In this document: piece by piece, positions 1,296 through 25,250 of the stretch | How the letters are laid out: every line of letters begins with the position of its first letter | Position numbering within the stretch: position 1 is the first letter of the stretch | Assembly: GCF_964194025.1 (NCBI RefSeq) | Contig: NC_134479.1 | Coordinates: 38,936,001 to 39,000,000 of the forward strand | DNA: 64,000 nt | From: Convolutriloba macropyga | Lineage: Eukaryota | Reading direction: 5' to 3' | The notes under the pieces: model-generated | What the model saw: the letters and a program-made list of their open reading frames with translations, nothing else | Told to the model about the DNA's origin: nothing | Databases searched by the model: none | Translations under genes and position numbers: made by a program

Positions 1296-1429
1296 TGAAG
1301 TAAAATCAGCATAATGAGTGTTAATGTTGAAGATTTCTTTTATAGAAGAGAATCATTCAATTGAGTGACAATGATGAAATTTATACCTACCAAAAAAGAA
1401 ATCGGCTTATTTCATGCTTTTGTATTTAG

Positions 1430-4400
1430 ATTCGAGTACAGTCACGTCAACGATGACATGTATGGACTGTCCGACAGTGACTCAGATGCTAGTGGCTCTG
1501 CTGAGAGTGGTAATGGTAAAACCGAACGAGGCGCTCCTAGGAAGCACAAGAAAAAGGGCGCTGGTAACGCGGACGATAACAGCTCCGATGGTGGTCAAGA
1601 GTTTGTTAGATCCGATCTCTACCAATGCGAGAAGGGTCTGTTAACGTACGGCTGGGGCAATTGGTTGAGAATTATTGAAGGGTGCAAGTTCAGGCGTGAT
1701 ATGACAACAAAGTTAGTCGAAGACTTGTGTCGGTGTATCTTGGCCTATGCATTGCAGTGGTACCAAGGGGATGAGAAGATCCAGCGGTTTATAAGAGAAC
1801 TGATAACTCCTGATAATGACAATATTGAATTCCTAAAATCTCATGCTGCTCAGTCAAGCGTTGCTCCACGAGGTCGGAAATCAGCGCGTGGAAATAAATC
1901 GGATCGATCAAACTCCGAAGCTAAAACGGAAGAGCAAACTCATTGGTCAAACACTGAGAACCTTGAAGCTGTTTTGTGTGATCCAACGTTTCGAAAACAT
2001 GTACGCTATCAATGCAATAAAGTACTAATTCGCGTCAGGACTTTATTTTTCATTCGTCATGAAGTTATTGATGACTTGGCTGAAAAAGTTGATTCAGGTG
2101 TAAATTACAAGGATCTACCATTGCATGTACCGCCGATTGATATAGTGAAACCCTGCGATTGGTGGGACGAAACATGCGACAAATGTTTGTTTATCGGTAT
2201 TTATAAACATGGATACGACCAGTTTACAAAGATCAGAAATGATCCCACGCTTTGCTTTTTATCGATCGTCGGTGAATCGGAAACCGAGATTCAAGATAAC
2301 ACGTTGGATGAAGATGAACTTGAGAATGACCTTGAAAATGCGGAAATGAAACCCGAAGGTCAAATGGACGGCGATGAAAATGAAGCGAAAAAGGACACAG
2401 GACAAGATGGAGAAAGTGATAATGCAACCAGTGTAAAGCAAGAAGTTGAACCGTCGGTAGAAACAGAAAGCACCACAGAAAATGGTGAAATTTCTTCTCA
2501 AGAAGCAGTTTCGAGTGAAACATCTGTGAAGCAAAATGATAACGAAGATTCGAAACCTGAAAATTCTGAAGAGAAAAGTAATGACCAAAATGATGAACAG
2601 GAGGCTACTTATTGGCCACCGACTTCAGCCATAAATAACAGACTTAGAAAGTTAATTGCCGCTCTTCAAAAATTGTCCAAGAAACAGAAACTCATGCTTG
2701 AAAAGCGCAAGAATCGACTTGAAAAACTAGCCATTATCAACGCTACGAAGCCGCCACCTGAAGTGAAAGAAAAATGGGCGAAACGCGAGGAAAATGATTT
2801 CTACAAAACCATATCGACTTTCGGTTTACAATATACACAAGATGGTAACGTTGTTTGGGACAAATTTAGAGTGCTGGCTTCTTTGAACCGTAAGTCAGAT
2901 TCTGCTCTCACGCAATATTGTGACGCTTTCAAGGCTATGTGCGAGAAAGTTTGCAGGATTAAAATTGAACCTCTTGACGAAGTTGATAGCTCAGCTCCTC
3001 AAATCGAACCGATCACCGAAGATCGAGCCCGGAAAACTCTGCACAGAATCGAATTGATGCGGAGAATTAGACTGGATGCAATTTATCATCCGGAATTTGA
3101 GGAGAGGATTAAACTGTGCCAGGCTGCAATGGATATGCCCTCATGGTGGATTCCGGGAGAACATGACCGGGACTTGATGATCGGAGTTGCGAGTCATGGA
3201 ATCCTAAGAAGCGAAGTCAACTTATTGCAAGATCCGACGCTTTGTTTCTTGAATGTCAAAGATGAGATCATGAAAAGCGTGCAACAAAAGCATGATGAAA
3301 AAGTTGCCAAGTTTAAAAGGGATAGAGACACCGAAATTACTGACTCTCAAGCAACGTTGACAACAGTATCAAACTCTACTCATGAAAATCTTGCCACTGA
3401 ACAAAATGTTGAAACTTCGTCAGTTTCAGTAGATAACGAGAAATCGGAAGTTTCGATGTCTAATTCAGACGAACCAAAGATCGACTCAGAGAAGAAAGAG
3501 AATGATGTCGGATCTACAGAAATGAATGAACCTTTGTCTGAAAAGGTCAATCTAACTGAGGAGATCAAAACTGAAATTTCACCAGAAGTGAAAAGTGAAG
3601 TTAAAACTGAAATTGAGCGCGCTCCCTCGCCAGCACCTGTGAACATAACTGATATGCTTGGAGTAGCGTACTTAGTGCAGTGGCCCAAAGATCGGGTTCT
3701 GGTTGCAAGGTTGGAGAAGATTTGTACTTGTATCGAGAACGGAGGATGGCCGAACATGAAATGGAACCAACCTCCCGCTCCGGTTTCATTTGACAAGCAA
3801 GCTGCATTGCAGGAAACGGAAGAGTTCCAGGAACGTCTGGTGGATAAAACTAACCAGCCGAAACAACAGCCCGTTGTCCAGATCATGCCAACTGATGCTA
3901 TTATTGATGGGTTGTCGGCTAACCGAGTTGCCAGTGATGGCTCTACTGTGTGCTCTTTTAACAAACCAGGACGTCGTGGAAAAGCGTCCAATGCAGGTGT
4001 ACATTTGCCGGCAAATATCCGGAAGCAAAGCAATAATGTCAGCGCGACACCGAATCCAATTGCTGATGAGAAAAGTTTGTCAAAACTTAGAGAGCTTTTT
4101 GAGAAGCAAGGTACAGCTATGGAGAATGAATCGCCTTTGCCGCTAAGCGGAGGAGGCATCGGAGGCATTATGGATTTGTCCATGAAAGCAGGTAATTAAG
4201 TCAAATCAAATTTAAAAGTATTTAAGTCAAATAAAATCGTAGTCATTTCGTACAACTTTTTATTCCGAGTACTGGTTTTAAATCTTTACAGAAACTGCTT
4301 ATCTTTCGAACGCAAAATCTTGCCGTGACTAGGAATTATATTTAAAGTCAGAGGAATAAACTCTATTTCTCTCTCTCTCTCTCTAATTTGGGATGTGATG

Positions 4401-6383
4401 GTTTTTTAAGGTTTCCTATCATATATCTGATATTGTGTTAAATGGCTTTGATTTTATATACTTGTATTATTTCTAGGAGCAGGTTCTCTAGGCATAAACG
4501 TTCCGAGTGTGAGCTCCAAGTACGCCAACAGTGAAAGGTCGACACCGGACTCGAGAGCAGAAGATGCGGACATCTCGGATCAGGGATCTGTTATTGCTGG
4601 TGGATCGGAAACCCCAGACCTAAAACGCCGAAGTGTTGGTAGCTCTAAACGCAAAAGGAAGCATGCTTCGATCATTATTGATCCCTCAAAACTTGATGTT
4701 GATAATATTAACGGAACAGAACACGTTGCAGTTGTTGATAGAATATCAGGTGTTAAAATTGAAGGAAGTGATGCTCCGATATTGAACAACGTTGTTGATT
4801 TCTTGTACAAGAACAGCACGTTTGACATTGCTCCTGAGTGGGAGGTTATCGTGAAGGCTCAGAAGAGATTCCCAGCCGATTTAATGAAGCGAGTTGCTGG
4901 TTTGAACCCTGGGGGTAGTCCAGAATCAAAGAAATTGAAGCAAAGTGGAAAGCAGCTGTACTCGCCTGCGAGATCAGTCAGCCAATCAGCTTCGAGCTCG
5001 GTGGCAAATAATCAGAACTCAGGTTCTACCTCATCAACTGCACAATCGGCCAATCTGTCATCCGCCGACCTTCTGTCGCAAGCTGCTTTACTTAGTAGTC
5101 TTTCATCCATGGGTGGGAGCTCAATGAATCCTTTCGGATCCTTGCCGAATCTACCTCCAATCACTCCAGACCTGGCATCGCTTGGGCTCTTCAATCCCAT
5201 GTTATCGATGTTTCCTGCAGGATCTCAGAGTACAACAGACCACAAATCAGCATCGTCAATTGCTGCAGCAGCAGCCCAAAGTGCTGCTTTGAATTATCAA
5301 TTGGCAAGTCTAGCGGCGGTATCGTTAAACCCGCTGCTTGCTCAGTCACTGAACCCGTTTTCATCGATTCCCGGTTTAAACCCGTTCGGAGGAGCAGCTT
5401 CAGGTCAAGACGCTTCAGCAGCGCAGTTGGCTGGCCTGTCGGCATTGCTAAGTGGAAGCTTGCCTCCAGGCATGAGTCCCGATTCTCTTCTTGGATCCCT
5501 GTCTCAACCTGTCAGTACTGCCAGTGCTACACCAGCACCTGTCGAGAATACATCATCAAAGCTTTCCGCAAGCAGTAGTGGATCTGGAAATAAATCAAAC
5601 AGTCAAATGTCTCCAAAAGCTGTAAATACTGCTTCAGACCTCCATTCCCCAAAGTCGCCTGTTGCAAGCGGTTCTGCATCGCCAGGGAACTCTAAAGTTG
5701 CGACCCCGCCATCGACACCTGCTAAATCTGGTACCCTCATAGGAACTGGAACTAGCGGAAGTTCTAGTTCAAATTCAAAGTCACAGCGTTCCTCTCCACC
5801 AGCAGCAATTTCTAATTCTGCGACACCCGCAACAGCAGCATCGCCAGTCAATCCTGTAGCATCAAATTTGCTTCCTAACATTCCGCAATTATCTCCAAAT
5901 GACCTCTTGACCGCTGCATCACTTGGATCGCTTCCTTTTATGATGCCACCATCGGTTCCGTTTCTTCCTTCAAGTCAGTCTTCGACCAGCTCAAGTTCAT
6001 CTTTAAACAGCGCGGCTGCTATTCCAGGCTTCGACCTATCGGCTGCAGGGTTGGAAGCTGCTCAATTGGCAGCTTTAGCCAGTTTATGTGCCGGTGGAGG
6101 TATTCCAGGAGCAACTGCGACGGGTGTGGATTTGCAACCCACAAACGCCCTGTTTGGAGGATCGGCACCGTTGTATCCCAACTCGGACTTGTCGAGGTTA
6201 TCAGGCGTCCAGAGCGATTCCTTCATGAATGAACAAAACGCTTTGTTGGCAAGAATGCAAAAAGAACTGGCTGATCATTTGGCAGGCACTAGCAGTGAAA
6301 CGAGCAACGTTTCTAGTTCTCAAATGAAGGACACGTCAATGAGTAATGCTGATACAAAATCGAAAAATCCGAAATCAAATTGA
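1430..6383 (+). CDS. CHD7: CHD7/8/9 (kismet-like) chromodomain-helicase, 3' part only; exons 1430-4191 and 4477-6383 (upstream exons are outside the window)
   Basis: CHD6-9 C-terminal motifs EKGLLTYGWGNW, WWDETCDKCLFIGIYKHGY..IRNDPTLCF, SANT-like KWAKREENDFYKTISTFG and WPKDRVLVARLEKIC. BRK domain INGTEHVAVVDRISGVKIEGSDAP..FDIAPEW. Acceptor tttag|A at 1429/1430. GT-AG intron 4192-4476 joins the two long ORFs in frame (G|GA). The paralogue (CHD6/7/8/9) cannot be resolved. Confidence 0.9.
4368..4384 (+). repeat. (CT)n microsatellite in the CHD intron
   Basis: Seen directly in the sequence. Confidence 0.8.
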
Positions 6384-7659
6384 TTTCACGATTGATTTGC
6401 AATTATAAGTTGGCATTTTTTTCGTAAACATCTAACCGATATCGCCGAGTGCTTGGTGAATATTGATGTCTCTCATCATAATGTATTCGTTGTGTTGATC
6501 TATCCTGGCTCTGGTCTCAAATCTATCAAATATTGTTGTACAAATGTGGAACTGTTATCCTTGGAAACTTGAAAAAACTTTCTTTCCACTAACTAAAAAT
6601 TGGAATTACATAAAATAGTATTTTCTTTTTAAAAAATAATAAACTAGACAACTTTGATATTGGGATGGCATATATGATAGTTTCAGTTTATAAGCTCTAA
6701 CAGTTAAAGGTTCTTTCAGATACAATTGGTCGTTTTCAAAGGAAACAGTTCCGTCTATTTTATTATTGTCAGTTTTTCATTTCACCTCATTTAAACGTAG
6801 CTTTGGTAAGTTGCTCACTAAGCTGCCAAGTTTCTACCAGGCAACCCAAAGATTCAGAAAAACTTGATTTTATCATAACTGAAAGTGCAGTATTCCATCA
6901 ATTTAAAAAATACATAATGAGTTTGTTTTGAAAGTGATATTTGTTAAGGAGGAAATTTGGCAGCTTATTGAACGGTACCTTTAGAAGATTTACTATTTGT
7001 GCTTTTTTTATTTGTATCAATTATAATAGATTTAGTTGTTCTGTACTGATTCTTCCATATTGGTGTGCTATATTAACCTAGTGTATAGTATCATCATCCA
7101 TGTTTTTAACCACCCCTATTCAATAAACAAAAATCATTCAATCCTACCTTTCTGATAATAAATATTCAGCAAATTGCTCAAACTAATTGATATATAGCTA
7201 ATTTATCCTTTTTGACATAATTAGTATTGCAGCCAAATTCTTAACATTCAATGTCTTTAATAGATTTCAAATGACACCCCGATTGATGCTTATTTGTATC
7301 TTTTTTCTTAAATTCAGTGTGCATAATTTGATAATTTTCCTTTCTTTTATCCCCTTTGTCGTCTTAATAATTGTATTACTATTTATGATTTGTTGTTTCT
7401 TCACCTTAGTGCAATTTGTATCATTAGTGCAATGCAGCCACCTTTCAAATTATCAGTGTAATTAATAGATTTTCTGCTATTTACAAAGTTTTCAGTTCAA
7501 TCAGTAGGGAAAGCGTCGGCTCATATATATTGAAGTTGTGGGTCGTTCCCATTATAGCCTCCCCTCTCCCAAATCACTAACATAATGGGGGGGCGTATTT
7601 TCCGTGAAGGACAAATGGGAAAGACCCACATTTATTTACGCAAATATTTTTTATGAAAT

Positions 7660-10430: not shown

Positions 10431-10856
10431 GATTTTTTCAACATTTGATGGACTTTATTGATTGATATTTCGAAAAACTTTGTTTCAAGCCTCTGAGTTT
10501 TCATTTGAGGAAGCGTGTAACGTCATTTTTGTCCATCGAAGATTTTGTTCTTGTGATTATTTCTGATCTTGTGACTTTTGGCACCGTCAAATTAGTTTTT
10601 TTTTATTGTCTGAATTGAAGCTATTACAAGGAAACTCTTAGAAGAACTACTTTAAGGATTTGGAAAGTCAAGGCTGTCAGCTTTTTGTTCAACCTGAGAT
10701 TTATAACAGAAATCTGCATTAAATTTAAGTATTTTCTGATTATTGGAATTTTATGAGAAATTAGTCATCAATCTTTTGCCGAACTGTCTTAAAGAATTTA
10801 TAAGCTCGGATATGTTTTGATGAAGTTTAACGGATTCTCTGTCTTTGCAGATATTT

Positions 10857-12877
10857 ATGAATGATTCAAACGTAGAGAACCGGAACCCTGGTCCCACGCT
10901 GTCCGAAAGTGGGGCCACTATACCGAATCAAATCGGTCACAATGTGTTCACAACAACAGAGACTAAACCTTTGGCACAGAATCACGCTGATAATGAGCTC
11001 AGAATGCAAGATTTGTCTTTGGAACAACAACCTGAAAAATCCAAGGAGTTTATCAAAGGATGGGAACTCGTAGACGTTCTGGGTAATTTTTTGATGATTG
11101 CGGGTTTTTGCATCGGAGGCATCTTTTTTATTAGAGGCAAGATTTTTGCAAGATGGGGTCTCGTTATCAGCTCTCAGCTATTAAGCTTCAAAATTTATCT
11201 GTCAAAACTGGCAAAAGCTTAGAAACCTTTGAGGCAAAAACTGGATGTTTCCTCTCAGAACAGAATGTTCTCTCCCAGAACAGATTCTCCTGAACGTTTT
11301 TGGTGTAATATTTGTTTGTGCAATGTACGGTTAGCTAGTTTTAGCTACTATTTGTTCGGATCGCACCTGGTGGGGTAGTAATTATGCCCAACTGTTCTTG
11401 TTAATAATGAGAAAAATCATGAATGTATATTATTGATAGTCAAATACGAGTTTGTTAGTTTTTTTGAAAAATTTTAGGGGAGGGTGCTTATGGAGAAGTG
11501 CATCTTGCCATAAACAAAGAAAACAACATCTACGTAGCAGTTAAAGTTGTTGCATTGTCAGACCAAAACAGAGAGTTAATTCGGAAAGAGACAGGAATTC
11601 ACAAACTTGTTCAACATAAAAACGTGATCAAATATTTCGGTGACCGACCCACGTCTGATGGCCATCAAATGTATATTTTCTTAGAATATGCAGAAAACGG
11701 AGAACTTTTCGATCGAATCGAGCCGGATATTGGAATGCCCAGAAAAGAGGCCTTCAAATATTTCACACAATTACTGGATGGTGTTGAATATTTACATAGC
11801 AAAGGTATTGTACATAGAGATTTGAAACCTGAAAATTTGCTTCTAGATAAAGATTGCAATTTGAGAATTTCTGATTTCGGGTTGGCGACTTTGTTTAAAA
11901 TGAAGGGTAAAGAACGAAAGTTGAATACTCGATGCGGAACTCCGGCTTATCTGGCGCCTGAAATTTTGTCAGGCGGCTATTTTTATGCTGAGCCGATTGA
12001 TGTATGGTCTTGTGGAATCGTTCTGTCGGCCATGATGACAGGCGAGCTTCCGTGGGACGAACCGACTCTAAATTGTCAAGAATTCAAGCTGTGGTCGGAA
12101 AAGAAGTATTATAACACACCTTGGCCTAAAATTGACACAATTGCTTTAGGGTTCTTTCTGAAAATTCTTCATTTGAAACAAGCTGAAAGGCTGACCATAC
12201 CAAATATAAGAAAAGAAACTTGGTATGTTCGACAAACTCAAGCTGCAAAGGCGTCTAGAAAACGACAATTTTCACCCGGGTCATCGCCCATTGCACACTC
12301 GCCTAGTAGACCTTTTAAAATGGCCTGCAATCGAATTGAAAATTCGCCTTGTAGGAGTCCATTGCCGGACTTTAGCCATGGTATGGCTCAAAGCCAGCCG
12401 AATATTTCCAGCCCTATCAGAACCCCAGGAAAGGTTTCCCTCGCTAGTGGAGGAGCATCGCCTGAGCTGACACGATCCACAAAAGACTTTATCATGAGCC
12501 AGCCGAATGATTTGGGTGCAATATCAGTTACACAAACAGGCCCTGGATCGCAGAAATTCAAAAAAGTAAACCGAATGACCAGATTTTTCACAAAGGGCAG
12601 CCAGTCTGAAACTCTGAACCTAATCAAACGGTACCTCGAACATAACGGCATATCTTACAAGTTCGAAGTTAATTTAATCACGGCTTCTGTTATGGATTCG
12701 AGATCTAATAGATTAGTGTGGAAAATTGCAGCTATTGGTACTGGCGAGAAAGATTTGAACTTGGTGGACGTTCGAATGTCAAAGGGGTGCGGAATTGAGT
12801 TCAAAAAGCAGTTTATCAAGATGAAGAATAAACTGGTTGATATGATAGTGGATTTACCCCTAACTTATATGCTGTAG
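10857..12877 (+). CDS. CHEK1: Checkpoint kinase 1; exons 10857-11082 and 11478-12877 (541 aa)
   Basis: Splicing GT-AG intron 11083-11477 restores WELVDVLG|EGAYGEV. Kinase motifs HRDLKPENLL, DFG and CGTPAYLAPE. SQ/TQ cluster (AQSQP, IMSQP, TQTGPGSQ). Chk1 C-terminal motifs RMTRFF and RMSKGCGIEFKKQF. Confidence 0.95.
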
Positions 12878-13070
12878 ACGATATTCTTTAATTTCAACGA
12901 ACAGAACCATAATCGATACAAGAATTATTGGCTGTTATATTAGTAACTTTTTGGGATCTAAAGTAGGGATCAGGAAATGCGAAACGAAGAACCTCATTTT
13001 AGAAAAAGTTTAATGTGTTTTGTCTATCAGATTTTGATAATTGTTGATTGTTTATTGTGTCAATGTTGCA

Positions 13071-13096
13071 ATTAAACTTTTTTTCATTGCATTAAA
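13071..13096 (+). terminator. Candidate Chk1 polyadenylation signals
   Basis: ATTAAA at 13071 and 13091, followed by T/GT-rich sequence, ~200 nt after the stop codon. Confidence 0.4.
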
Positions 13097-13401
13097 AATG
13101 CTTGGTGCCGAGTTTTAAATTTTTAAGTTTTTGTTCTGTGAACGCTCCAAAGTTGTGCTATTGTGTTCTATTTTTTTGGTTCATTTAAAATTTGAGATAT
13201 GATTTTTATATACTGCTTTGAGTGTTATCTGCAGTTTCATCAACTGTTAAGTTCCAGAATTTGTTAAATTGAGATTATTATAGCAAGGATTTACATCAAG
13301 TTCGAGTTGAATTTTAACGTTTCTTTCAGTAAATTGTGCAGAGGAAAAATGTTGGTCATCCGTTTGCTGTGGGCTAGCTGTTTCAAGTTTTAGATTTAGT
13401 A

Positions 13402-16400
13402 ATGCCTTCAAATAGAATCATTTCATCAATTACCAAATTCGGAAGTAGGTCGACCCCATTTCTGAAGCCTCATGCAGCGATAGCTAACACAAATTTGCTC
13501 CAAAGAATGTCCAAGTCAACTTTGGAAAGCAAGTTTGAAGAGATGTCCTCAAAAGTCAACAGTTTGAAGAAAGATCCCGGTAACGAAGTCAAACTAAAGA
13601 TGTACGCTCTTTTTAAACAGGCAACACAGGAAAGTTTGATGCTCATTTTGTTTCACTTTAGCCTGACTCCTGTTGTCTTCTAATATTCTGTAAGTATTAC
13701 TGCATTAGATATTTTTTTTTCTGAAATTTTTGTCCGCTTCACGCAACAATTACATAACATGAGTCGTATTGCTAATAGTTTATTGTAAGTTCGTTGTTTT
13801 GCTATCAATGTAAACACTTGAAAAAAGTTCAGAGGAGGGGAGGGGAAAATTCGACACCAGCAATCCTTCAATGCAGCCCTGCTTTTAATTTTTAAAAATG
13901 GCTTCTCTAGCTTTTGTTTTTGAAATGAGCATCAAATGTCTAGGGTGCAAACACAACCTCAAAACCCGGAGCTCTCAATTTTGTAGCGAAAGCAAAATGG
14001 GACGCATGGACAAACTTGAAAGACATGAGCAAAGATGACGCCATGCAGGAATACGTCAGCGTCGTCGAGGGATTAATAACCAATGAATCGTCGTCTTCCG
14101 AGGAATCGAAAGAAACCGGAAAGTCAACGGCAGAATCGAAATTTGAGTTTTTGCTGTATGAAGTGAAAGATGGTTACTGCAAAATAACGTTTAACAGGCC
14201 CGAAAAGTACAACGCGATAAACTGGAAATGTTACGAAGAAATCGGAAATGCTTTGAATGAGGCAGCTCAAGATGAAAACGTTGTAGTTGCAGCCATTACA
14301 GGTACGAATCAAGTTTACTCAGTCCGTTTGCCATTTTAAATTGCTTGAGTAGTTTAGCTTGTTTAAACGAGTACTCTTGCGTGATACAGTCGAGAAAAGT
14401 ATTTGAGCTGATATTTGTGTTTATAGTTCATTTGATCAAAGATTATAAGCCAATTTGTGTAGGCAGTTTTTTTGGAATTGTGCAGGCAACATTCCAGTAA
14501 TTGATCAATTTCATTTTATTCAACTCTTGGGCGCCAATCGCCAGTACGAGTTGTGGAGGATTCTTTACTGCTTGCGATGCAGTTTTGCACTACACTTGGA
14601 GGCAAGACATTTCAACACTTTTTCAACTGCTATGGGGCTGACACGGTTGTTTTTTTTGTTCCAAAGTGGTCACTATGGCCCAATATACACTTGAGAAAAC
14701 ATCAGCAATTTTCCCCGAGTTTGTAATGTTCAAAAGTGGCTCATGTTTTGCGCATTTTCTTGGTTTTGTTTGGTTTCTGGTAGGTAACTGCATTTTCAAG
14801 TTGCTGGGGGACGTAGCCGACGTTCTTTTTGAAAAGAAATTAAGTAAATTGTAATCGAATTCGTACGGTATTGATCCTTTTGAACGAAGAAATTTCAATT
14901 CGTTGATGGTTCTACTGTTCAGGAGTTTTGTCTGAATTTAGAAGTGTAGCAGTCTTTCCAAATTCATTTTTTGACAGTGACAAGGCACAGTGCAATATAT
15001 GTTTTTTACTCTGCATCAAAGCTGCGATGTTACTTCTTACATTGAAAAGTTTCTACCACAATCACCCCTTTAGCCATCGTTCAATGTCTTTGGTTCTTTC
15101 GCAATAGTGATTGTGTCCTCCACCAAGGTTGTGTGGAACGAAGGACAAATTTGGGAGCTGCAAAAGGATTAGACAAAGGAACTGGGTTGTCAGGGTGTAG
15201 AACACACCCTTACATCAGCTGAGTCAGCAATTAAGACTACTCGCCTTATATAAGTTGCACAAAATTTGGGGTAAATTGAGAGAACTTGCTTCGAGTCGGC
15301 AATTGAGACTACTCGGCCTATATAGGTAGCTCAAAAATGGGGGATAAGTTTTCTTGAGATTCTTTACATAAAAAGTCTAATTTTCTCTTACGAAATCTTT
15401 GGGGCATCAAACAGGAATGATATAGAGTTAAGGAGTAAGATATCCGTTTATGATGTTTCAGCGTCATATTATGATTTTAAATTGTAAATTTTGTTGCGCA
15501 TATTGTATTAATCTGGTTTCAGGCAACGGACCCTTCTACTCAGCGGGCAACGATTTAAGTGGATTCCGACAATTGGCGGAAGAACATGGTGGTGACATTT
15601 ACAAAGCAGCCGCAGCCGCTGGAGTTCGATTGGAGACATTTGTGGACAGTTTTATCCAGTTTCCGAAGCCATTAGTTGCTTTGGTCAATGGACCGGCCGT
15701 GGGAATTCCAGTCACAACATTAGGATAGTTGACGCGCATTTCTGCCTTAAGAAATTTAGAGAATGATTTTCCTCATGAAATATGGAAGTAGAAGAGGATT
15801 TCCCTCTTTTTGCAAGTAGAAGCGGTATTTGTTCAAGGAGGCTCTGATATGATTGGCTGAAATACCATCAGTAATTTGCTGAACTAACTTTTCTTTCATT
15901 TTCATTTCACCTGAATTTTCTCTTACAAACTAATGTACCTTTAATCAGTAAAGACGGTAAGTCGAAAGGCAAGAAACAAAAAAAAACAGTCTAGGAGATA
16001 AAAATGGAGATTGAAAAAAATTTTTTTAGATTGAAAATAATTTCAAAATTATTGATGGTGTTTCAGCAACGAAGTATTCTAACTGGTATTTTGTTTTAAG
16101 GACAAGCTGAAAAACGTTTTCTTTTGCTGGCCACTCCATCTGTGTGGATATATGGGGATTGAGGCTCTGTGCTCGATGTCCCTATTTTAACGCCGACGTT
16201 AATGCTTAATTTTTTTTTACAATTGAAGCTCTAAACTAGTGTTAACGTTGGGTTCTGGTTCGGGTTAACGCTGAGTTTTGTATTAATACCCAATATAAGA
16301 GATAAGTAGAATTTGAGGAAAGGGTTTTCGAGGGAACACTTTATTGAATTTTCTTGATAATGTTTTGAACATTTGTCCTTCAATGGTAAATTAGTAACTT

Positions 16401-16851
16401 TTAATTTAAAATGCGCGTATCTTCAGGACTTTTCGACATTGTGCTTGCGTCATCAAACGCAACATTCCACACTCCTTTTCCTTCTCTGGGCCAGTCACCT
16501 GAAGGTTGTTCATCATACACATTCCCCAAGCTTATGGGCCACGCAAAAGCTGTCGAGTTGCTCATTTACGAAAAGAAAATCACAGCAGTTGAAGCTATGG
16601 AGCGAAATATAGTCAACGAAGTTATAGAGCAAAGCGATTTTCAGCGTATTTCACAAGAGAGACTTGAATTTTACGCATCATTGCCTCGGAAAAGTTTGCT
16701 TTACTCGAAAGGTTTGATTAGAGATAAACAACGTGAGAAATTGATGGCTGTCAACAAAGAAGAATGCGAGCGTTTAGTTGAAAGATGGACGTCTGAAGAA
16801 TGTATAAATGCCATTATGAAATTTTTGACCAGGAAACAGTCGAAGATATAA
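13402..16851 (+). CDS. ECI2: Enoyl-CoA delta isomerase 2 (ACBP + crotonase domains); exons 13402-13629, 13944-14301, 15523-15723, 16427-16851 (403 aa)
   Basis: ACBP motif [27 protein letters not shown]. Crotonase motifs [38 protein letters not shown] and [15 protein letters not shown]-terminal SKI (PTS1-like). Exon lengths sum to 1212 nt, in frame. Confidence 0.93.
13630..13943 (+). other. Non-canonical GA-AG intron (ECI2 intron 1)
   Basis: CAG|GAAAGT...GTCTAG|GGT gives KQATQ|GANTTSKPG, colinear with ECI2 KQATEGPCNMPKPG. The nearby GT at 13634 gives a frameshift or stop. Confidence 0.75.
15221..15350 (+). repeat. Two diverged 72-bp tandem units in ECI2 intron 2
   Basis: GAGTCAGCAATTAAGACTACTCG at 15221 and GAGTCGGCAATTGAGACTACTCG at 15293. 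Confidence 0.7.
15724..16426 (+). other. Non-canonical GA-AG intron (ECI2 intron 3)
   Basis: TTAG|GATAGT...CTTCAG|GACTT gives VTTLG|LFDIV, matching ECI2 VTLLGLFD. An in-frame TAG at 15726 rules out a downstream GT donor. Confidence 0.8.
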
Positions 16852-17461
16852 GTTAACGATGTCATATCAACGTGTCTGAACTGTTTGTTAAATTGTTTTA
16901 ATATATGAGAATATTGTAAATTTCAATGTTCGTAGACTTCTACAATCTCGGCTGACAAAGCGGTCAGTTGTTTTTTGTTTAAAGATTATGAAAACTTCGA
17001 ATCATCGGTACGTGGCCAATGTCCGAAAAATCGATTTTGTCGGGCATTTTTGCGACCCATGTTTTAAGATAAGAGTTGGAAGCGTTTGGAAACGAGTTAA
17101 ACTAGGCTTATTTAGTTTCAAAATTGGATGAGTAGTCAAATTTCACAAAGCGCTACCGTGAAAACCTGGGACAATCATTCGTCACTAATTTCCGCGCCAT
17201 AAGTCACTAAACTCCACACAATGAGTAACTCTTTTCCAATAACTAAGACAGTGTCAATTAGAAATGCAATAAATCCGAATTGGCGATGAATAAGTTAAAT
17301 GGATAAGCGTTTTTCCTTTATCAGATCTGTGCATACAAATGGGAGTCGACATGGAATAGAGTTTTGCATGTTAAGTTGAAGAGACAACTCTGAATTCTCA
17401 CAGCTACTGTTTGTTATGGTTCGTATTTTCGTGTCTTTTCAGATGTGATTTATTTTGGGAT

Positions 17462-20400
17462 ATGTTGGTTTGCAAAGTTGACTTTGGTCGAGATCCAGTT
17501 TTCTTGGCCGGAGAACAGGTCAAGGTGAAGTTGACTATTGAGAATGCCAGAGAAAGCAGTGGTAATTGCGATGTCAGCCAGACAGATGGACAGTCTAACG
17601 ATGTCCAAGAGGACACACTGGCTATTGCCACTGGTCAACTGGCCTGCAGGTAAGAAAAATATCAGAATATATAGCCAAATTGGAACTATTTTGTTTCCTC
17701 CCAGTTTCTTTGCTCCCTCTTAAAAACTGTGTTGTTATATAGCACGTTACTGTATAAAAAATACAGTACATGCGCCTGAGGGCGCAAACTTTATATGCCC
17801 ACGAAGGTGGTGGGGACTGAAACAGAATAGATCCGCCAAATTATCGTCAAGGCTCATAACAATGTTGCTTTGACATTACAAACATTTCTCCAACGATATC
17901 CTACTCGAAAAGCTGTGATGTTGACATATAAGGTTTTTGCATTCGTTTTTACTTAAGAATTGTTGATAGCCGCGGTTCATAGACACGCGCGGAAGAGCTC
18001 TGTGCGCTATGTGTTGAATGATAATTAGCTGAGAGTTGCGTCTTGATCTTTTCAGTTGAATTTCATTACCTTTCTAACCATATTTTCACTGTTAACATAT
18101 TGAGGTGGACACAGTCTGGCGTCAAGAATTTATATATGTAGGCACCAGTCTGGCACCAACAGTACATCATTACAGATTGCATTAGAATCCCTGAAATTAG
18201 CTTGTAGATATTTTTCAATATTCAGTATTCTTAAGTTTTAATAGTTGTACTTATCTCTAAGCGTACTTGAATAACAATAAGGCGTTGGTTGTATACCACA
18301 ATACCATCTTGATAATGTGTTTAGAAATTTATCGGTGTAGCACGATACACAATGCGTTTTTGATGATAGGCGAGTTGCTGATTTTCACAGGTGTGCGGTT
18401 AATGGCAACAAAGTGAACAAAGAGGCAGTAGAAGCAAAAATGGCTCAATTCTTCACAAACTCAGACTCAACATCCCTCTCAAATAAAGCAAAGTTCCAAT
18501 TGGGTGCTGCCAAGTCCAAGACTTCATTCAGCATTGCACAGGTGTCAGTCTTTTCTGTCTTCTGATCTCGCGAAGAAAGCAATAATTGTGTCGAATAGTT
18601 AGAAGAATCTTTCTGAGTTGCATTAAGTTACAAAAACTCATGAAGCTCTATACCTTGATTTTATTTAGACGCAAATTTATTTAGCCATTTTCAATGAACT
18701 ACCAATGTGAGGTTTTGTAAGCTTAGTCACGCATCCTTTAAAGCGGCCTAACAATAGTGATAAAACCATGAATTCTGCAAAAAGTGAACTCCAATGTTAT
18801 TTTAGGACGAGAAGGGCTACAATGTGTTCTGCACAAAACCAGAAATCATCTGCTGCGATTTGAGCTTAGGTCTGCTCTTCTAAAAATTGTAATAAAAAGC
18901 AGCCATTGTTGACATTGTAAGATCTGATCAATTTTGAATTTTTATAGGTCCTCAAGAATCAGTGTCCTTCTCATTCGCTGTTCAACTTCCCCTGTCTTCT
19001 GAAATGATTCCGACGTCATTCAACGGACATACTGTCAGATTTACGTATAAACTGCTGTTCGGTTTTCAGAAGGTGGGACAGCCTATGCAGTTGATCAAGT
19101 GTCCGATTCGAGTGTTGACACTGTGTAATAGTTTGCACGGGGAGAACCTGTCAGCCATATTGGGTGAGCAGTAACAATTAAGATCTTTTGTGTTGTTATA
19201 GCTGCCGAGCCGTTTCGCCATTTGCTGCACTGTAGGAGAGCATCGAAGTTCCATTTTGTCTTTGGCATAGTCACATTTGTGTTCGCGTGAACATAGACAG
19301 CATCCGTTCAATTAAATATAAGGTGGTGGCTGATTTTTTTGCCCAACAAGGAAGTATTTATATGGCTAGCTGGCATACTTAAGCTTATTCTTGTTTTCCT
19401 TCGTTTTTTTTCAAATTTTCTCGATATCTTCGGCAAACGCGAGATCATCTGTTAACAAATTTCCTATGCGGCAGATAATGACTATTATTTTTAATGCATC
19501 GATTTTATGCCACCGTTTGACCAACTGGAAAACACGCCCATTTTAACAATCCTTGTAATAATGTGTTGAATTGCTGTTTTTCAGCTTCGCCAAAAAGTCC
19601 CTCAGAAAAGAAAGACGTTGACAATCCTTTTGTTGAAGAGTCGGAGGTGTATCAGAAGTCAACTGAGGAACTGAACCAAAACGTCATAATGCAGGTCAGT
19701 ACCCACATTTTTTTAAATAGCCGCACAGCGATTGCTGGGGGCTATCATTGGCCTTCTCTTGGTTTTTTACAATCCAAAGAATTTGAATCGTATTGGGGCG
19801 CTGTCTTTTTTACGACTCGAAGAGGAGTATTGGAGAAGTCCTTTTTTTAATCAATCTTATTGGAGTGATTTTTGAAGCGGGAAATGAAACGCGTGAAAAA
19901 TTTTGGAGTGATTTTGGTGCGGAACAAAAGTGAAAAGCGGAGCTAAAAGAGAGTGTTTTTTGTTCATACCGCTGTTTTTGAGAGAGCGAGAAATTGATGT
20001 GTGAAAAAATTTTCTCTAAGCGAGCGAAATTTTTTTGTTCACGTGACTGTTTTTTTGTTTTAATGCTTTAAGTGGCATTTGGATAGAAGCTTTTTACCTA
20101 ATGAGTTTTCAAAATACCAATTGACTAAAGTGTTCTTGGTATTTATCATTTTTTTCTGAGGAAAATGGACAGGAAATTTTAAAACCATTTTTTAATAGCC
20201 GCACAGCGATAGCTGGGCTATTATTGGCCTTCTCTTGGTTTTTTTTTATTTCGTCGTCATGATTTTTGTTACGACCATATGACGTCACAGCCACTTTTTG
20301 TTCATTCGTTCATTCAATTTCAACTGAATTGCATGCGTGACTTCATTTTTCGCTCTTAGTGGAGCGAGTTTTTTTGTTCATTCGCGTGATTAAATTTTTG

Positions 20401-22827
20401 GTCACATTTGACTTACCTCACTCTCATAAATGACTTCCTCACTTTGAAATTGACTTTTATTTACTCTAATTCAAAGAGAAGATCAAATGGGTGTGTGTCA
20501 CTCTAAATGAAGGTTATTTGAGTCAGCTGACCTTATTCGGCTTTATGTTTCCTTGTACTATTAAAAAAACAAGTTAAAAAACTCAAGTTTTTCTCTTTTT
20601 TGTTGAATTTGTTTTTGAATGCCGTTTCTTCTTCCTTACTTTTTAATGGTTTTTGTGGAGGTTCAGGGATCATAATAGTTGTTCCAATTGTTTAGTCATA
20701 AATTTGGGCTATTTTTTCCTTCAAGTCGTTTCCGGAGTTCTTCCGGCTATGTTTTTTTTAAGATCTGTTCACACATTTTCATGATTTTTGAAGTCAAATT
20801 GCAGTAGTGATTTTGGTCACACCGAAACAGGAAATGGAGCGAAAAAGCGAGTGGTTTTGCCGCGTGAATTTTTTTCGCTCTAATTTTAAGGTAGAGTGAG
20901 GAAACGGTTTTTGAACAAAAATTCGCTTTCTCGCAAGTGGTTCACATGCGCCAATTTCACTTTGGTTTTTACTGTTTTTTTCGATTTTTTTGATCGGATT
21001 TTTTCCTAAATGGTTTTTCCGATTCACTCATAGTCCGTTCTAGGTCTAGTTTTTTTAGTCAATGAAGGTTCTTTGAATTGTACGTCAAGACTTGTCCTGC
21101 TATGTTTTTTTTATTTCGTCAAGATTTTTGTTAGGACATATGACGTCACAGCCACTTCTTGTGCATTCGTTCATGCAATTTCAACTGAATTGCGTGCGTG
21201 ACGTCATTTTAAGCGCGAGTTTTTTTTGTTCTTTCGCGTGATTAAATTTTTGGTCACACTTGACTTACCTCACTCTCAAAAATGACTTCCTCACTTTGAA
21301 ATTGAATTTTATTTACTTTAATTCAAAGAGAAGTCAAATGGCTGTGCCACTCTAAATGAAGGTTATTTGAGAGCAGCTAATAGAGGCAGCGAAAACTTAT
21401 ACAGATTTTTAATCAAAATATAACTAATCAGCCTTCAATGAAAAGACGAATTTTTTGGTCTGTCTTTGTTACTGTTTTTTTTTGAGACAGCAGATCTACG
21501 AAGCTATTGCGGCTATTTTCTGGCAATCTGCAGGCTATGCTTGTTCTTTTTGTGATTAACAACGCGTCCTATCTTTGTGAATGTAAATAAACCAAGGCCT
21601 TAAATCCCTATTTTGTTTTTCTGGCTTCTACTCAATTATAGGATCTTCACTTTTATCGACTCCACAATTTTGGTGGGTGGAGCATCTGATTCATGCTTGA
21701 TTTGCGTCTTATATAATAGGATCCATGGTACAAAAGGATAGGACATGAGAGGTCGAATTATTTTCGCGGGTCAAATGATTTTCGTGATTCGAACGATTTT
21801 TGTGGGAAGTCACTGAGTTTTTTTTTGGGATAATCGAAGTGTTTTGTAGGCTGAAATTGCGATGCAGAGTTTGAGTCACAGGGGTGTCAATGGAAGTATT
21901 AGTGGTGGTGGGAATGGTCACGTCACATACAGTGTTCGGAATGGACAAACAGAGATTGCCAAGTTCTCTCTAGCCAAGTCATGCTTCCGCATTGGAGAAG
22001 AGATTAATGGTTAGATTTTTTGGCTTCCTAATTTTGATCGGATTTCTTCAGAAACTTGTGTAAATTTAGATGTTTATTACGGCAGAATGTACGTATGGAG
22101 GTGTTAATAGATGTCATGCTATTTTTGGGGGGGATTTGTCGGCTTTGCGAAAAAGATGCTTCTGCCTCTAGTTGCAACTTTCATTGCTATAATTGTTACC
22201 TAATTTATTTCGACAGATTTTTATATTTTTGTTACTTGCGTAAGTACTGTTACGGTTCATCTTTGAGAAACGAATTGAATTAATTACACTATTCTCTTTG
22301 CTGTCCATTACTGTTATTATTCATAAATAATATTGTTAATCAAATTAAATATTGTTGCAGGTTTCTTTGAATTCAACCCTTTCCCGCGGTACTGTCTACA
22401 ATACACTGTGAGCTTGCAATGTGAAGAAAAGCTGTCCGAACAGTTCCGACTCGATTCCTTGTCAACGGCGCAACCAGAGTCGTTCGGATCCAAATGCGAA
22501 TACGTTGCAGATCTCTCACAATGTGAAGTTTCTTTGCCGATTCCTCATTCCGTTACTCCATCTTTTTCCACAGAATTGGTGTCCTTTTCATGGAGCTTAC
22601 AATTCACGTTTATAATATCAACTGAAAGTCATCCTGACATCGCGACGAAGTTCACGAACACTTCGTTTGATGAAGAAAACGACGATCAAATTATAAATTA
22701 CGGTTCGCCTTCCAATTACGAGACGTTTTCGTGGACGTTGCCTATAACGCTGTTACCCAACAATCCGTTCAGGCTTCAAAGTTGCTCAACAGCTTTGAAG
22801 CGGCACCATATCTTAAATATGAGTTGA
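17462..22827 (+). CDS. RGP1: RGP1 (RAB6A-GEF complex partner, Ric1-Rgp1); exons 17462-17649, 18391-18541, 18806-18869, 18948-19163, 19585-19694, 21850-22009, 22361-22827 (451 aa)
   Basis: Motifs PVFLAGEQVKVKLTIEN, TKPEIICCDLSLGPQES, PTSFNGHTVRFTYKL..Q..PIRVL, KSCFRIGEEING, CLQYTVSLQCEE, TPSFSTELVSFSWSLQF and ETFSWTLPI. Six GT-AG introns with compatible phases; total 1356 nt. Confidence 0.88.
19710..21545 (+). repeat. Modular repeat cluster in RGP1 intron 5 (modules A-B, A-C, B-C-E)
   Basis: AATAGCCGCACAGCGAT at 19716 and 20193. Module C at 20248-20528 and 21114-21378. Confidence 0.85.
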
Positions 22828-23149
22828 ATTGTAATATTGTAAATAATGTCAATTTTATGGGGATTTTGATTGTGTATTGTTTATTTATTGTATTCAAAAG
22901 CAAATTGAGATAATTTAATTGGTTTTTGCGGAACATTAACAGATGAAGCAAGTCTTGTGCAATTAAGTTTTCCAGGAATTGATTATCAATTTTTGGAAGT
23001 ATCACTAGAAGTTTAGTGTCGTAATCCATCAGTTAAGCCCAGTTTTGGTTTTTCACTAGTTTGTGATTTTGTCTACGCGTTGAATAAGCTTCGAATTGTT
23101 TGCTAAAAATCACGTAATGGCCATTTTCAGACGTGATTTGGCTGTGTTG

Positions 23150-23274
23150 ATGGATACAACGATGGAATCTATAACTGTGCTTCCACCTGTAATGAAACCT
23201 ATAGGGGTTTCGGAGAGCGATTTGGAAGAAGGTGTCAAACAGGAGACGAGAACTCTACGGGTTCCCTCCAACAG
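23150..23274 (+). CDS. PNO1: Probable first coding exon of PNO1/Dim2 (KH-domain 40S biogenesis factor); the rest of the gene is not in the window
   Basis: MDTTMESITVLPPVMKPIGVSESDLEEGVKQETRTLRVPSNR resembles PNO1 ..GKEETRKIPVPANR(YTPLKENW). Ends at a phase-2 donor AG|GTTAAT; acceptor TTTTCAG at 23124-23130. The match is short and recalled from memory. Confidence 0.65.
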
Positions 23275-23608
23275 GTTAATATAACTGGACAGAAAAGAAG
23301 TGTCCTGAAAGGATAGGATTTGCCTTAAAATTTCTGATCATAAATAGGATCGTGAAATTGTACCTTTTAATGTTGAACACTTTGTAGTACTGTGATTAAT
23401 TGCTCTCGAACAAAGTTCGTAGCAATTATTGTAAACGTGTTGGTCTTTTTTATGCAAAATTTTTTGCTTGACCGTTTTTGCGTTTTTCTAGAACATTCTT
23501 AAGTGTCTTTTTCACGCTTTCGTTCATTTTTGAGTGATTTCTTTTGTTCTCACTCCGAAGTAAAGCTTGTTGCTAAAATAAAAACGATTGCAGCATTGCA
23601 ACAAGAAG

Positions 23609-23690
23609 GGACCGATAGCCTAGTGGGCAGTGCTTCTGGTGAGGGATCGGGAGGTGCATGGTTCGAATCCCGGTGTGGTGAACTCTTTTT
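23609..23690 (+). mobile_element. tRNA-derived SINE head or pseudo-tRNA (Pol III A and B boxes)
   Basis: A box TAGCCTAGTGG 23616-23626, B box GGTTCGAATCC 23660-23670, TTTTT at 23686-23690. Acceptor and T stems pair poorly. Confidence 0.6.
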
Positions 23691-24289: not shown

Positions 24290-25250
24290 TTTGCAGCTAT
24301 TCCGGCAGTCTGCGGGCTATTTTTTTCCAATAACCGCACAGCGATGGCTGGGGCTATTATTGGTCTTCTCTTGGTTTTTATTTCGTCATCAGGTTTTTTG
24401 TTACGACCATATTACGTCACATCCACTTGGAATCTGCTTTTTGTTCATTCATTAATGCAATTTCAACTGAAGTGCGTGCTTGACGTTTTTGTTCACTTAG
24501 TGGAGCGAATTTTTTTGTTTATTTGCGTGGTTAGGTTTTTGGTCACACGTGACTTTACCTCACTCTCAAAAATGACTTCCTCATCTTGAAATTGACTTTT
24601 ATTTAATTTAATTGAAGGGGATAAGGTCAAATGGGTGTGTGTCACTCTAAATGCAGGTTATTTGAGAGCAGCTAATAGACCCAGAAATAACTTATACAGA
24701 TTCTTAATCAAATTGTAACATCTCATCCTCTAATGAAAAGAGGAAGTTTTTTGATATTTGTTTTAATGTTTTTTAAGACGTTCTTTAGATCTACGAAGCT
24801 ATTTAGGCTATTTTTAGCAATCTGCCAGCTGTGTTTTTTCTACTTTGGCGGATAAAAATGTGTTGCGCTTTACCGTAAGTCACAACTTGTTCATTATTTT
24901 GCATGAAATCGTTTTGACTCTAGGCTGGTTTTGTTCTTTGCTTCTTCTGATCAAAGTGCTTCCGATTAAAGTGCAAAGCAATATAAATTGAACGGAGTCA
25001 TAAAAACCAAATCAGGAGTAGAAACGCGATGCAGCCCAGTTTTAGATGTCTTCTACTTGATTTTTTCTAATGCTTAATGGTATTAGTGCTCACCCCATTT
25101 AGCCCCTCATAGTGTGTCAAACTAGAATATCCAATCAAAATAGCGCGCGCATAATAATTTTTAATACGAAAACTAATTTCAATTTTGTCTGTTCTTCCAA
25201 TCCCAATTGGTGGTGTGGGAATCAATTACGGCTATTTTCCGCTTATGTTT
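24290..25250 (+). repeat. Modular repeat cluster after the PNO1 exon (modules A-C-E-D)
   Basis: 24328-24840 aligns with 20193-20528 and 21114-21545. 24865-25230 aligns with 850-1260. Confidence 0.8.

Follow-up and report, generated by a model that had tools for sequence, protein, structure and literature searches.

Operons resolved into single mRNAs by spliced-leader (SL) trans-splicing occur in nematodes, flatworms, tunicates, chaetognaths, and a few other groups, and it is debated whether they had many origins or are ancient. In the SL2-type operons of Caenorhabditis elegans, unrelated housekeeping genes share a strand, UUUCAG acceptors lie near the downstream ATGs, and the poly(A) signal precedes the acceptor by roughly 150 nt, while the operons of tunicates (Ciona, Oikopleura) have almost no spacer. 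The acoels form a long bilaterian branch that is either early or allied to the deuterostomes. We found no report of acoel operons in the literature searched; a published account of SL trans-splicing exists for one acoel, Symsagittifera roscoffensis, in which 30.2% of genes are trans-spliced (Martinez et al., 2022; PMC9911081). The pipeline of that study split neighbouring trans-spliced genes by trans-splice and poly(A) peaks, and the paper does not mention operons (PMC9911081). The repeat-rich flatworm Macrostomum lignano has ~30% of its genes trans-spliced, with operons delimited by a repeat-adjusted distance below 1 kb (mode near 100 bp) and spacers inflated by repeats (Ustyantsev and Berezikov, 2021; PMC8629364), whereas in the chaetognath Paraspadella gotoi the operon criterion is less than 250 bp between genes (PMC12460157).

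A cluster of genes in the acoel Convolutriloba macropyga bears comparison with each of these. It resembles S. roscoffensis in having acceptors just ahead of the starts of conserved housekeeping genes, and M. lignano in combining a repeat-rich genome, conserved housekeeping genes, and a repeat-inflated spacer (ECI2-RGP1, ~290 nt once adjusted); however, M. lignano belongs to the Platyhelminthes and its operons have the support of reads that carry the leader and of poly(A) reads, whereas the C. macropyga cluster is known from DNA. With C. elegans it shares unrelated housekeeping genes on one strand, acceptors near the ATG, and a distance of ~150 nt between poly(A) signal and acceptor in three spacers, but its coding-to-coding gaps are 2-5 times longer and no Ur-like conserved element was found. 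Like the chaetognath and tunicate operons, it is a co-directional cluster rich in broadly expressed genes of the kind resolved by a leader, although its spacers are longer than those of P. gotoi and the tunicates.

A conserved same-strand gene cluster

The window (the whole stretch of 64,000 nucleotides that was analysed) carries on its + strand, head to tail, the genes for Chk1, ECI2, and RGP1 and the first exon of PNO1, as read from the sequence with spliced models that yield intact proteins (Table 1). The RefSeq proteins match, the source of the genome being C. macropyga: the Chk1 model is identical to XP_075258307.1, contains a Pkinase domain, and has Chk1 proteins as its best named matches. 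The ECI2 model, with ACBP and ECH_1 domains and GA..AG boundaries at introns 1 and 3, aligns colinearly to orthologues that lack introns and to a catalogue protein (P0123), and the RGP1 exons have orthologues at loci of related acoels (L001, L002, L003, and L027). Exons 2-3 of PNO1 lie outside the window, 85.3 kb downstream (G000:C12:39044544-39045291); a genome search found them as a single locus with no retrocopy, and the resulting junction (..PSNR/YTPLK..) agrees with XP_075258310.1. RefSeq annotates the cluster genes separately. The earlier note had counted five + strand genes; all are indeed on that strand, but only four lie within 10851-23274, and the fifth is the upstream CHD6-9-type gene, on whose ORFs the Pfam HTH_CHD6-9 and BRK domains were detected. 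Two blocks 3' of these ORFs (6986-7254 and 7393-7465) are conserved in relatives by sensitive blastn and are probably further CHD exons, which leaves at least 3.3 kb between the end of this gene and the Chk1 acceptor.

Table 1. Features of the cluster and its upstream neighbour, in window positions
Feature	Positions	Strand	Remarks
CHD6-9-type gene, 3' part	1365..7465	+	Upstream of cluster; ORFs 1365-4199, 4509-6383
Chk1 acceptor	10843..10850	+	CTTTGCAG/A; ATG 6 nt on
Chk1 coding region	10857..12877	+	Exons 10857-11082, 11478-12877; 541-aa model
Chk1-ECI2 spacer	12878..13393	+	516 nt stop-to-acceptor; single copy; ATTAAA at 13071, 13091
ECI2 acceptor	13388..13393	+	TTTTAG/A; ATG 8 nt on
ECI2 coding region	13402..16851	+	Exons 13402-13629, 13944-14301, 15523-15723, 16427-16851; 403-aa model
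ECI2-RGP1 spacer	16852..17442	+	591 nt stop-to-acceptor
RGP1 acceptor	17435..17442	+	CTTTTCAG/A; ATG 19 nt on
RGP1 coding region	17462..22827	+	7 exons; 451-aa model; Pfam Rgp1 on two exons
RGP1-PNO1 spacer	22828..23130	+	303 nt stop-to-acceptor; single copy
PNO1 acceptor	23124..23130	+	TTTTCAG/A; ATG 19 nt on
PNO1 exon 1	23150..23274	+	Only PNO1 exon inside the window

We compared this region with three related acoel assemblies, whose Chk1 identity is 58-69%. Species A (L001, haplotig L027) has the order CHD - Chk1 - ECI2 - RGP1 - PNO1, species B (L002) Chk1 - RGP1 - PNO1, and species C (L003) Chk1 - ECI2 - RGP1; order and single strand of Chk1-(ECI2)-RGP1-PNO1 are thus maintained in all three, and a CHD gene precedes Chk1 in L001-L003 as well. 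In C. macropyga, Chk1, ECI2, RGP1, and PNO1 constitute a conserved same-strand cluster of unrelated housekeeping genes.

Start-codon acceptors and the spliced leader

All four start codons are preceded by an acceptor of the type TTT(N)CAG or TTTTAG, at the positions and distances claimed in the earlier note (ends at 10850, 13393, 17442, and 23130; 6, 8, 19, and 19 nt before the ATG); for ECI2 an alternative site, ATTTAG, may also serve, its end at 13399 lying 6 nt past that of the first. The claim that A follows each of these sites was likewise borne out on reading the sequence, whereas none of the 12 internal acceptors of our own gene models (including those of PNO1 exons 2-3 from outside the window) is followed by A: the reported preponderance of G holds for these, with the count of 10 of 12 corrected to 11 G and one C. 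The window has ~1.4 motifs of the TTTNCAG/TTTTAG type per kb, and the start-codon sites might on that account be functionless chance matches in AT-rich DNA. This is most improbable, as a TTTNCAG, TTTCAG, or TTTTAG motif, picked post hoc after the sites were seen, ends 1-20 nt upstream of 4/4 cluster starts versus 3.4-3.8% of window ATGs (0.7-1.9% if a following A is required), and such motifs recur at orthologous positions in three genomes with unalignable flanks. Chance alone would hardly yield these four acceptors. A position-weight matrix built from 10 internal acceptors proved overfitted and was left out of this estimate. In the relatives, a TTTCAG- or TTTTAG-type acceptor lies 3-34 nt upstream at 10 of the 12 start codons checked, the exceptions being Chk1 of L003 (nearest acceptor 62 nt upstream) and Chk1 of L002 (none clear).

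The sites could also be ordinary cis-splice acceptors, joined without any leader to a non-coding 5' exon with its promoter further upstream. The spacers may contain weak GT donors, and ~70% of the genes of the sister acoel are not trans-spliced (PMC9911081). We nevertheless consider it unlikely: the three spacers hold no strong donor motif, only 168-591 nt would have to accommodate the 5' exon, its promoter, and the 3' UTR of the upstream gene, most orthologues repeat the acceptor close to the ATG, and the A that follows it is unlike cis acceptors. Further, the RefSeq PNO1 model starts at ATG 23117 and runs colinear across the 23130 acceptor with no upstream 5' exon joined to it. This colinearity, which we attribute to an annotation pipeline that does not model the leader, speaks weakly against a cis-spliced 5' exon, and the RefSeq start appears to lie 11 codons too early, the leader site having been ignored.

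The genome does encode a leader. The published S. roscoffensis leader has 2612 matches in it at up to 3 mismatches versus 0 for a control, and the 31-nt leader of the C. macropyga SL RNA genes, GCCTAATTGTTGTGATAAACTTATTAAATAG, is identical to it over all 31 nt. The S. roscoffensis leader is printed with a 32nd base, A, whereas the SL RNA genes of C. macropyga have GT after base 31; hence this A probably comes from the acceptor side, as the base that usually follows it. Leader copies with the GT donor form tandem arrays on C9 at a spacing of 1.06-1.8 kb, and the unit is predicted to fold (z = -4.7) into a stem of leader and intron, a U-rich Sm-like stretch that is single-stranded, and a hairpin at the 3' end, a modelled layout of the classic SL RNA type. 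About a thousand retroelement copies start exactly with the leader; in one of them (L028) it is joined at an internal CTTCAG/A acceptor that is still present in sister copies (L029-L033), and such leader-headed copies are DNA fossils of SL addition. C. macropyga accordingly has the requisites of SL trans-splicing, including SL RNA genes. One leader type was seen in this genome. A leader ending in AUG was ruled out, there being no AUG within the 31 nt, and a search of the genome for a retrocopy of leader plus ECI2 returned none at up to 3 mismatches. From the acceptors and the leader we consider it probable that SL addition takes place at these four sites: joined by trans-splicing at the acceptor that ends 6-19 nt ahead of the ATG, the leader would give each mRNA its 5' end and leave very short 5' UTRs.

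Shared pre-mRNA or separate promoters

The stop-to-start gaps, put at ~520, ~610, and ~320 bp in the earlier note, measure 524 (Chk1-ECI2), 610 (ECI2-RGP1), and 322 nt (RGP1-PNO1). The second spacer contains an old dispersed repeat of ~300 nt (~16993-17300), which holds its sole AATAAA (17268) and without which it measures ~290 nt; DNA contigs likewise have loose ends at the edges of this repeat. The third has no canonical AATAAA or ATTAAA. All three spacers thus fall under the repeat-adjusted 1 kb of M. lignano, and none of the three coding-sequence gaps falls within the chaetognath 250 bp. Scans of both strands between the four genes found no family-matching ORF, tRNA, or Rfam RNA. The locus is operon-like in that at least two same-strand genes are separated by short spacers with nothing between them, in an organism with SL RNA genes and SL trans-splicing (arrays, leader-headed copies, and the sister-species leader). 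Protein searches with Chk1, ECI2, and PNO1 returned genome-derived acoel proteins, P0123, and RefSeq models, and no acoel transcript contig. Searches for RNA runs with Chk1 exon 2 and with ECI2 exon 4 plus spacer returned only DNA runs (X1-X5, one study); contigs over 11650-17640 span introns and spacers without joints and are genomic DNA.

In an SL-resolved operon, which we regard as the likeliest mode of expression of this cluster, RNA polymerase II would initiate upstream of Chk1, within the gap that follows the CHD gene, and read across the short spacers; the upstream mRNAs would be cleaved and polyadenylated, and the downstream ones capped by the leader. The earlier note had proposed such a polycistronic unit; that proposal is now supported in part, by SL RNA genes, DNA traces of the leader, the acceptors, and the conserved gene order, while the shared pre-mRNA is something that we infer. 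This reading is plausible because related acoels share the layout, and on the sequence evidence we regard co-transcription of the cluster as evenly poised. Alternatively, the genes may be independent neighbours in a block of conserved synteny, each with its own compact promoter in the spacer and a short outron, and receiving the leader as monocistronic transcripts. We deem this possible, if rather doubtful. Most SL trans-spliced genes of other animals are non-operonic (PMC8629364), and the separate RefSeq annotation agrees with independence. In species B, ECI2 has left the cluster for another contig, where the nearest same-strand ORFs are roughly 2 kb or more upstream, and it retains a like acceptor, 7 nt from the ATG; such an acceptor therefore belongs to the gene rather than to the cluster, and alone does not imply an operon. 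Likewise, the conserved order may represent general synteny, since the CHD-Chk1 adjacency is equally conserved across a multi-kb gap.

The spacers bear on both readings. They are long enough for a compact promoter, with 303-591 nt in C. macropyga and 1.2-1.5 kb in species C, the ECI2-RGP1 spacer has tolerated a repeat insertion, and species B has a cluster that lacks ECI2, all of which count against an operon. So does, as far as alignment can tell, the lack of any conserved stretch that might represent a coupling element: none was found in the spacers against the three relatives with MAFFT and sensitive blastn, by which the only conserved elements upstream of Chk1 were the blocks just after the CHD ORFs. 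Against independent genes, three successive same-strand spacers of less than 0.6 kb are unusually tight for a repeat-rich genome of 1.18 Gb, where introns are swollen by repeats (2.1 kb in RGP1 and 85 kb in PNO1) and yet spacers 1 and 3 are still single copy. In species A, the closest relative, stop codon and next acceptor are 507, 237, and 168 nt apart, and in two of these spacers (ECI2-RGP1 and RGP1-PNO1) the poly(A) signal precedes the next acceptor by ~147-170 nt. Together with the ECI2-RGP1 spacer of C. macropyga, the range is 147-175 nt, which comes near the intercistronic distances of nematodes and flatworms.

Implications for acoels

That acoels (Xenacoelomorpha) have true SL-resolved operons is a conclusion for which we see an even chance. 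If it is true, the four-gene unit would date back at least to the divergence of Convolutriloba from its relatives at ~58% Chk1 identity, would have a nematode-like spacing of ~150 nt between poly(A) signal and acceptor, and would have survived a massive invasion of repeats, including the 85-kb intron of its last gene. A confirmed operon would affect the annotation of the new C. macropyga genome, for instance the RefSeq start of PNO1, and a new phylum, Xenacoelomorpha, would join the operon-bearing animals.

Gene models and start-codon acceptors

Spliced gene models built from the inspected 10-26.5 kb stretch of the window, which corresponds to chromosome 12, 38936001-39000000, yield four intact genes, Chk1, ECI2, RGP1 and PNO1, whose identities are backed by Pfam domains and best named protein matches, with stop-to-next-start gaps of 524, 610 and 322 nt. 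These models, the acceptor positions and the gaps bear out an earlier note on this DNA, which had proposed a polycistronic unit of five + strand genes at 10851-23274, resolved by spliced-leader (SL) trans-splicing; the span holds only four genes, the fifth + strand gene being of the CHD6-9 type and lying at least 3.3 kb upstream. PNO1 belongs to the span by its first exon, while its other two lie 85.3 kb further downstream. An intact ECI2 protein is obtained only with GA..AG boundaries for introns 1 and 3, and then lines up with the intronless orthologs of three relatives and with P0123, a catalogue protein, in colinear fashion and with junctions free of indels. Each of these two introns is single copy in the genome, and since all three ECI2 introns are missing in the relatives they look like lineage-specific gains.

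Features of the Chk1-ECI2-RGP1-PNO1 locus and related loci (window positions unless a chromosome or locus is named)
Feature	Coordinates	Strand	Remarks
Chk1	exons 10857-11082 and 11478-12877	+	541 aa; identical to RefSeq XP_075258307.1 (C. macropyga)
ECI2	four exons within 13402-16851	+	403 aa, spliced model
RGP1	seven exons within 17462-22827	+	451 aa, spliced model
PNO1 exon 1	23150-23274	+	sole PNO1 exon inside the window
PNO1 exons 2-3	chromosome 12, 39044544-39045291		in phase (..PSNR/YTPLK..); same joining in RefSeq XP_075258310.1
Chk1 acceptor	ends 10850	+	6 nt 5' of ATG
ECI2 acceptor	ends 13393	+	8 nt 5' of ATG
RGP1 acceptor	ends 17442	+	19 nt 5' of ATG
PNO1 acceptor	ends 23130	+	19 nt 5' of ATG
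ECI2 introns 1 and 3	13630-13943, 15724-16426		GA start, AG end
GTGATTT..TTTGG-like string	17443-17461 (RGP1), 23131-23149 (PNO1), L027 18481-18505 (species A PNO1)		directly after acceptor
Dispersed repeat, ECI2-RGP1 spacer	16993-17300		~300 nt
Short non-coding repeat	19700-21400, 24300-24700, L013 280-1100		shared motifs, e.g. AATAGCCGCACAGCGAT, GTCACACTTGACTTACCTCACTCTCA
PNO1 intron 1	23275-64000, on to chromosome 12, 39044543		~85.3 kb
tRNA-like stretch	23600-23680		GGTTCGAATCC-type T-arm
SL RNA gene arrays and leader-headed elements	chromosome 9, 23.14-23.78 Mb and ~62.06 Mb (L022-L025); L004-L011, L028-L038		
Species B ECI2	L026 3504-11125 (ENA ERZ25074608)		TTTTAG 7 nt before ATG

The base following the acceptor is A at all four start-codon sites, as against G at 11/12 and C at 1/12 internal acceptors, where the earlier note counted G at 10/12. 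A TTTNCAG, TTTCAG or TTTTAG motif ends within 20 nt upstream of 4/4 start codons, whereas the rate for ATGs across the window as a whole is 3.4-3.8%; the motif for this chance estimate was picked post hoc, after the sites were known. That the motifs before the ATGs arose by chance is very hard to credit. The RefSeq PNO1 model (XP_075258310.1) takes ATG 23117 as its start codon, so that polypyrimidine tract and acceptor (23117-23149) become coding sequence (MAIFRRDLAVL..), which we read as the product of an annotation pipeline without leader modelling. Were the leader joined at 23131, the real start would be ATG 23150, and such early-start artefacts would be expected wherever the leader is ignored. 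The string that RGP1, PNO1 and species A PNO1 have in common at the start of the 5' UTR may be a chance occurrence in T-rich sequence; the short RGP1 5' UTR also opens with a one-codon uORF (ATG TGA).

Spliced-leader RNA genes and leader copies in the genome

A search of the C. macropyga assembly (1,175,981,408 bases, 4,694 scaffolds; published as a chromosomal assembly of 1,175.98 Mb in 4,694 scaffolds, PMC13650328) with the leader of Symsagittifera roscoffensis (PMC9911081) gave 2612 matches at up to three mismatches and 0 for the reversed control, with no leader copy anywhere within the window. Where GT follows the leader, the copies are arranged in tandem arrays on chromosome 9, spaced 1.06-1.8 kb apart. 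Their repeat unit, in which the 31-nt leader runs directly into GTAAGTAT, is predicted to fold into a stem between the leader 3' half and the intron, a single-stranded U-rich stretch and a strong hairpin (-34.4 kcal/mol, z = -4.7), a modelled structure with the usual SL RNA layout. As GT directly follows base 31, the leader is 31 nt long; base 32 (A) of the published leader is probably the favored first base after the acceptor, i.e., part of the acceptor exon, consistent with the A after all four acceptors of the cluster.

Other leader copies are fused to unrelated multi-copy sequences (10 and 5 copies, 92-100% identity), with upstream flanks that all differ; these are retroelements for which leader-capped RNA served as the template. 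One such family has five members (L029-L033) that read leader-CTTCAG-AGTTGAATG.. and one (L028) that reads leader-AGTTGAATG.., the latter being a DNA fossil of leader re-addition at an internal CTTCAG/A acceptor in C. macropyga. The species thus possesses a working SL system, alongside the four intact genes and four conserved acceptors. The SL RNA genes, leader fossils and conserved acceptors make leader splicing, as claimed in the earlier note, very likely, and each mRNA most probably begins with the 31-nt leader at 10851, 13394 (or 13400), 17443 and 23131; that cis-spliced 5' exons feed these acceptors instead is improbable.

Gene order and spacers in related acoels

Protein searches recovered orthologs on long ENA contigs of three other acoel assemblies, in each case on a single strand: CHD, ~4 kb, Chk1-ECI2-RGP1-PNO1 in species A (L001, haplotig L027; Chk1 69% identical), CHD-Chk1-RGP1-PNO1 in species B (L002; 58%) and CHD-Chk1-ECI2-RGP1, followed by the end of the locus, in species C (L003; 59%). 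Ten of the 12 start codons checked are preceded, at a distance of 3-34 nt, by a TTTCAG or TTTTAG acceptor, the exceptions being Chk1 of species C (closest acceptor 62 nt upstream) and of species B (none clear). Species B ECI2 lies outside the cluster on a separate contig, preceded by same-strand Rpb4 and ubiquitin-conjugating enzyme genes, which may make up another co-directional cluster with it, the nearest same-strand ORFs being roughly at least 2 kb off. Since this gene keeps its acceptor away from the cluster, a pre-ATG acceptor is a sign that a gene accepts the leader and need not mean that it belongs to an operon. Moreover, the CHD-Chk1 adjacency is equally well conserved across a multi-kb gap, so that the kept gene order may be mere local synteny.

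Stop-to-acceptor spacers measure 516, 591 and 303 nt in the window, 507, 237 and 168 nt in species A, 632 and 399 nt in species B, and ~1200 and 1458 nt in species C; flanking spacer sequence is not alignable between the window and the relatives. A canonical poly(A) signal precedes the next acceptor by 147-175 nt in the ECI2-RGP1 spacers of the window and species A and in the RGP1-PNO1 spacer of species A. The first and third window spacers are single copy in the genome. The second harbors a member of an old, dispersed repeat family, for which there are at least 266 candidate copies at 68-84% identity; this member supplies the spacer's sole AATAAA, and without it the spacer is ~290 nt long, near the 237 nt of species A.

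Repeats also fill introns of the cluster genes, namely RGP1 intron 5 (2.1 kb) and PNO1 intron 1 (85 kb), the equivalent of the latter being ~0.7 kb or absent in relatives. A T-rich satellite in PNO1 intron 1 (at least 40 copies of ~590 bp, with variants of 471 and 776 bp, from position ~33 kb to the window end) explains why the AT skew is about -0.35 between 26 and 64 kb. The short non-coding repeat, probably a MITE-like family, fills intron 5 of RGP1 as well as parts of PNO1 intron 1, and the tRNA-like stretch in the latter, in which ARAGORN calls no tRNA, is probably a fragment of a tRNA-derived SINE.

Transcription of the cluster

We propose, with moderate confidence, that a single promoter 5' of Chk1 would drive all four genes as a polycistronic pre-mRNA, with the 3' end of each upstream gene being formed and the leader then added to the next gene ~150-300 nt later. 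The reading of the earlier note is borne out in part, its operon being plausible but unproven. The main competing explanation, to which we assign a clearly lower though still appreciable probability, is that a compact promoter inside each spacer serves its own gene, each being trans-spliced as a monocistronic unit; the detached species B ECI2 and the equally conserved CHD-Chk1 pair would suit it, and the short poly(A)-signal-to-acceptor distances would suit a shared transcript. Contigs from public sequencing runs, all of one study, cover introns and spacers alike without joints, indicating that the sequenced material is DNA.

Spacers of classical operons are shorter than those of this cluster, and the coding gaps exceed the 250-bp operon rule used for chaetognaths (PMC12460157), whereas they fall well within the repeat-adjusted 1-kb rule (mode ~100 bp) of the repeat-rich flatworm M. 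lignano (PMC8629364). In S. roscoffensis, SL trans-splicing affects 30.2% of genes, in a paper that never mentions operons (PMC9911081); the C. macropyga genome note (PMC13650328) has 0 occurrences of spliced leader or annotation terms, and our literature search found no operon report for acoels or Xenacoelomorpha. If co-transcription of the cluster is true, it would extend a known kind of system to a new phylum, the mechanism itself not being new.
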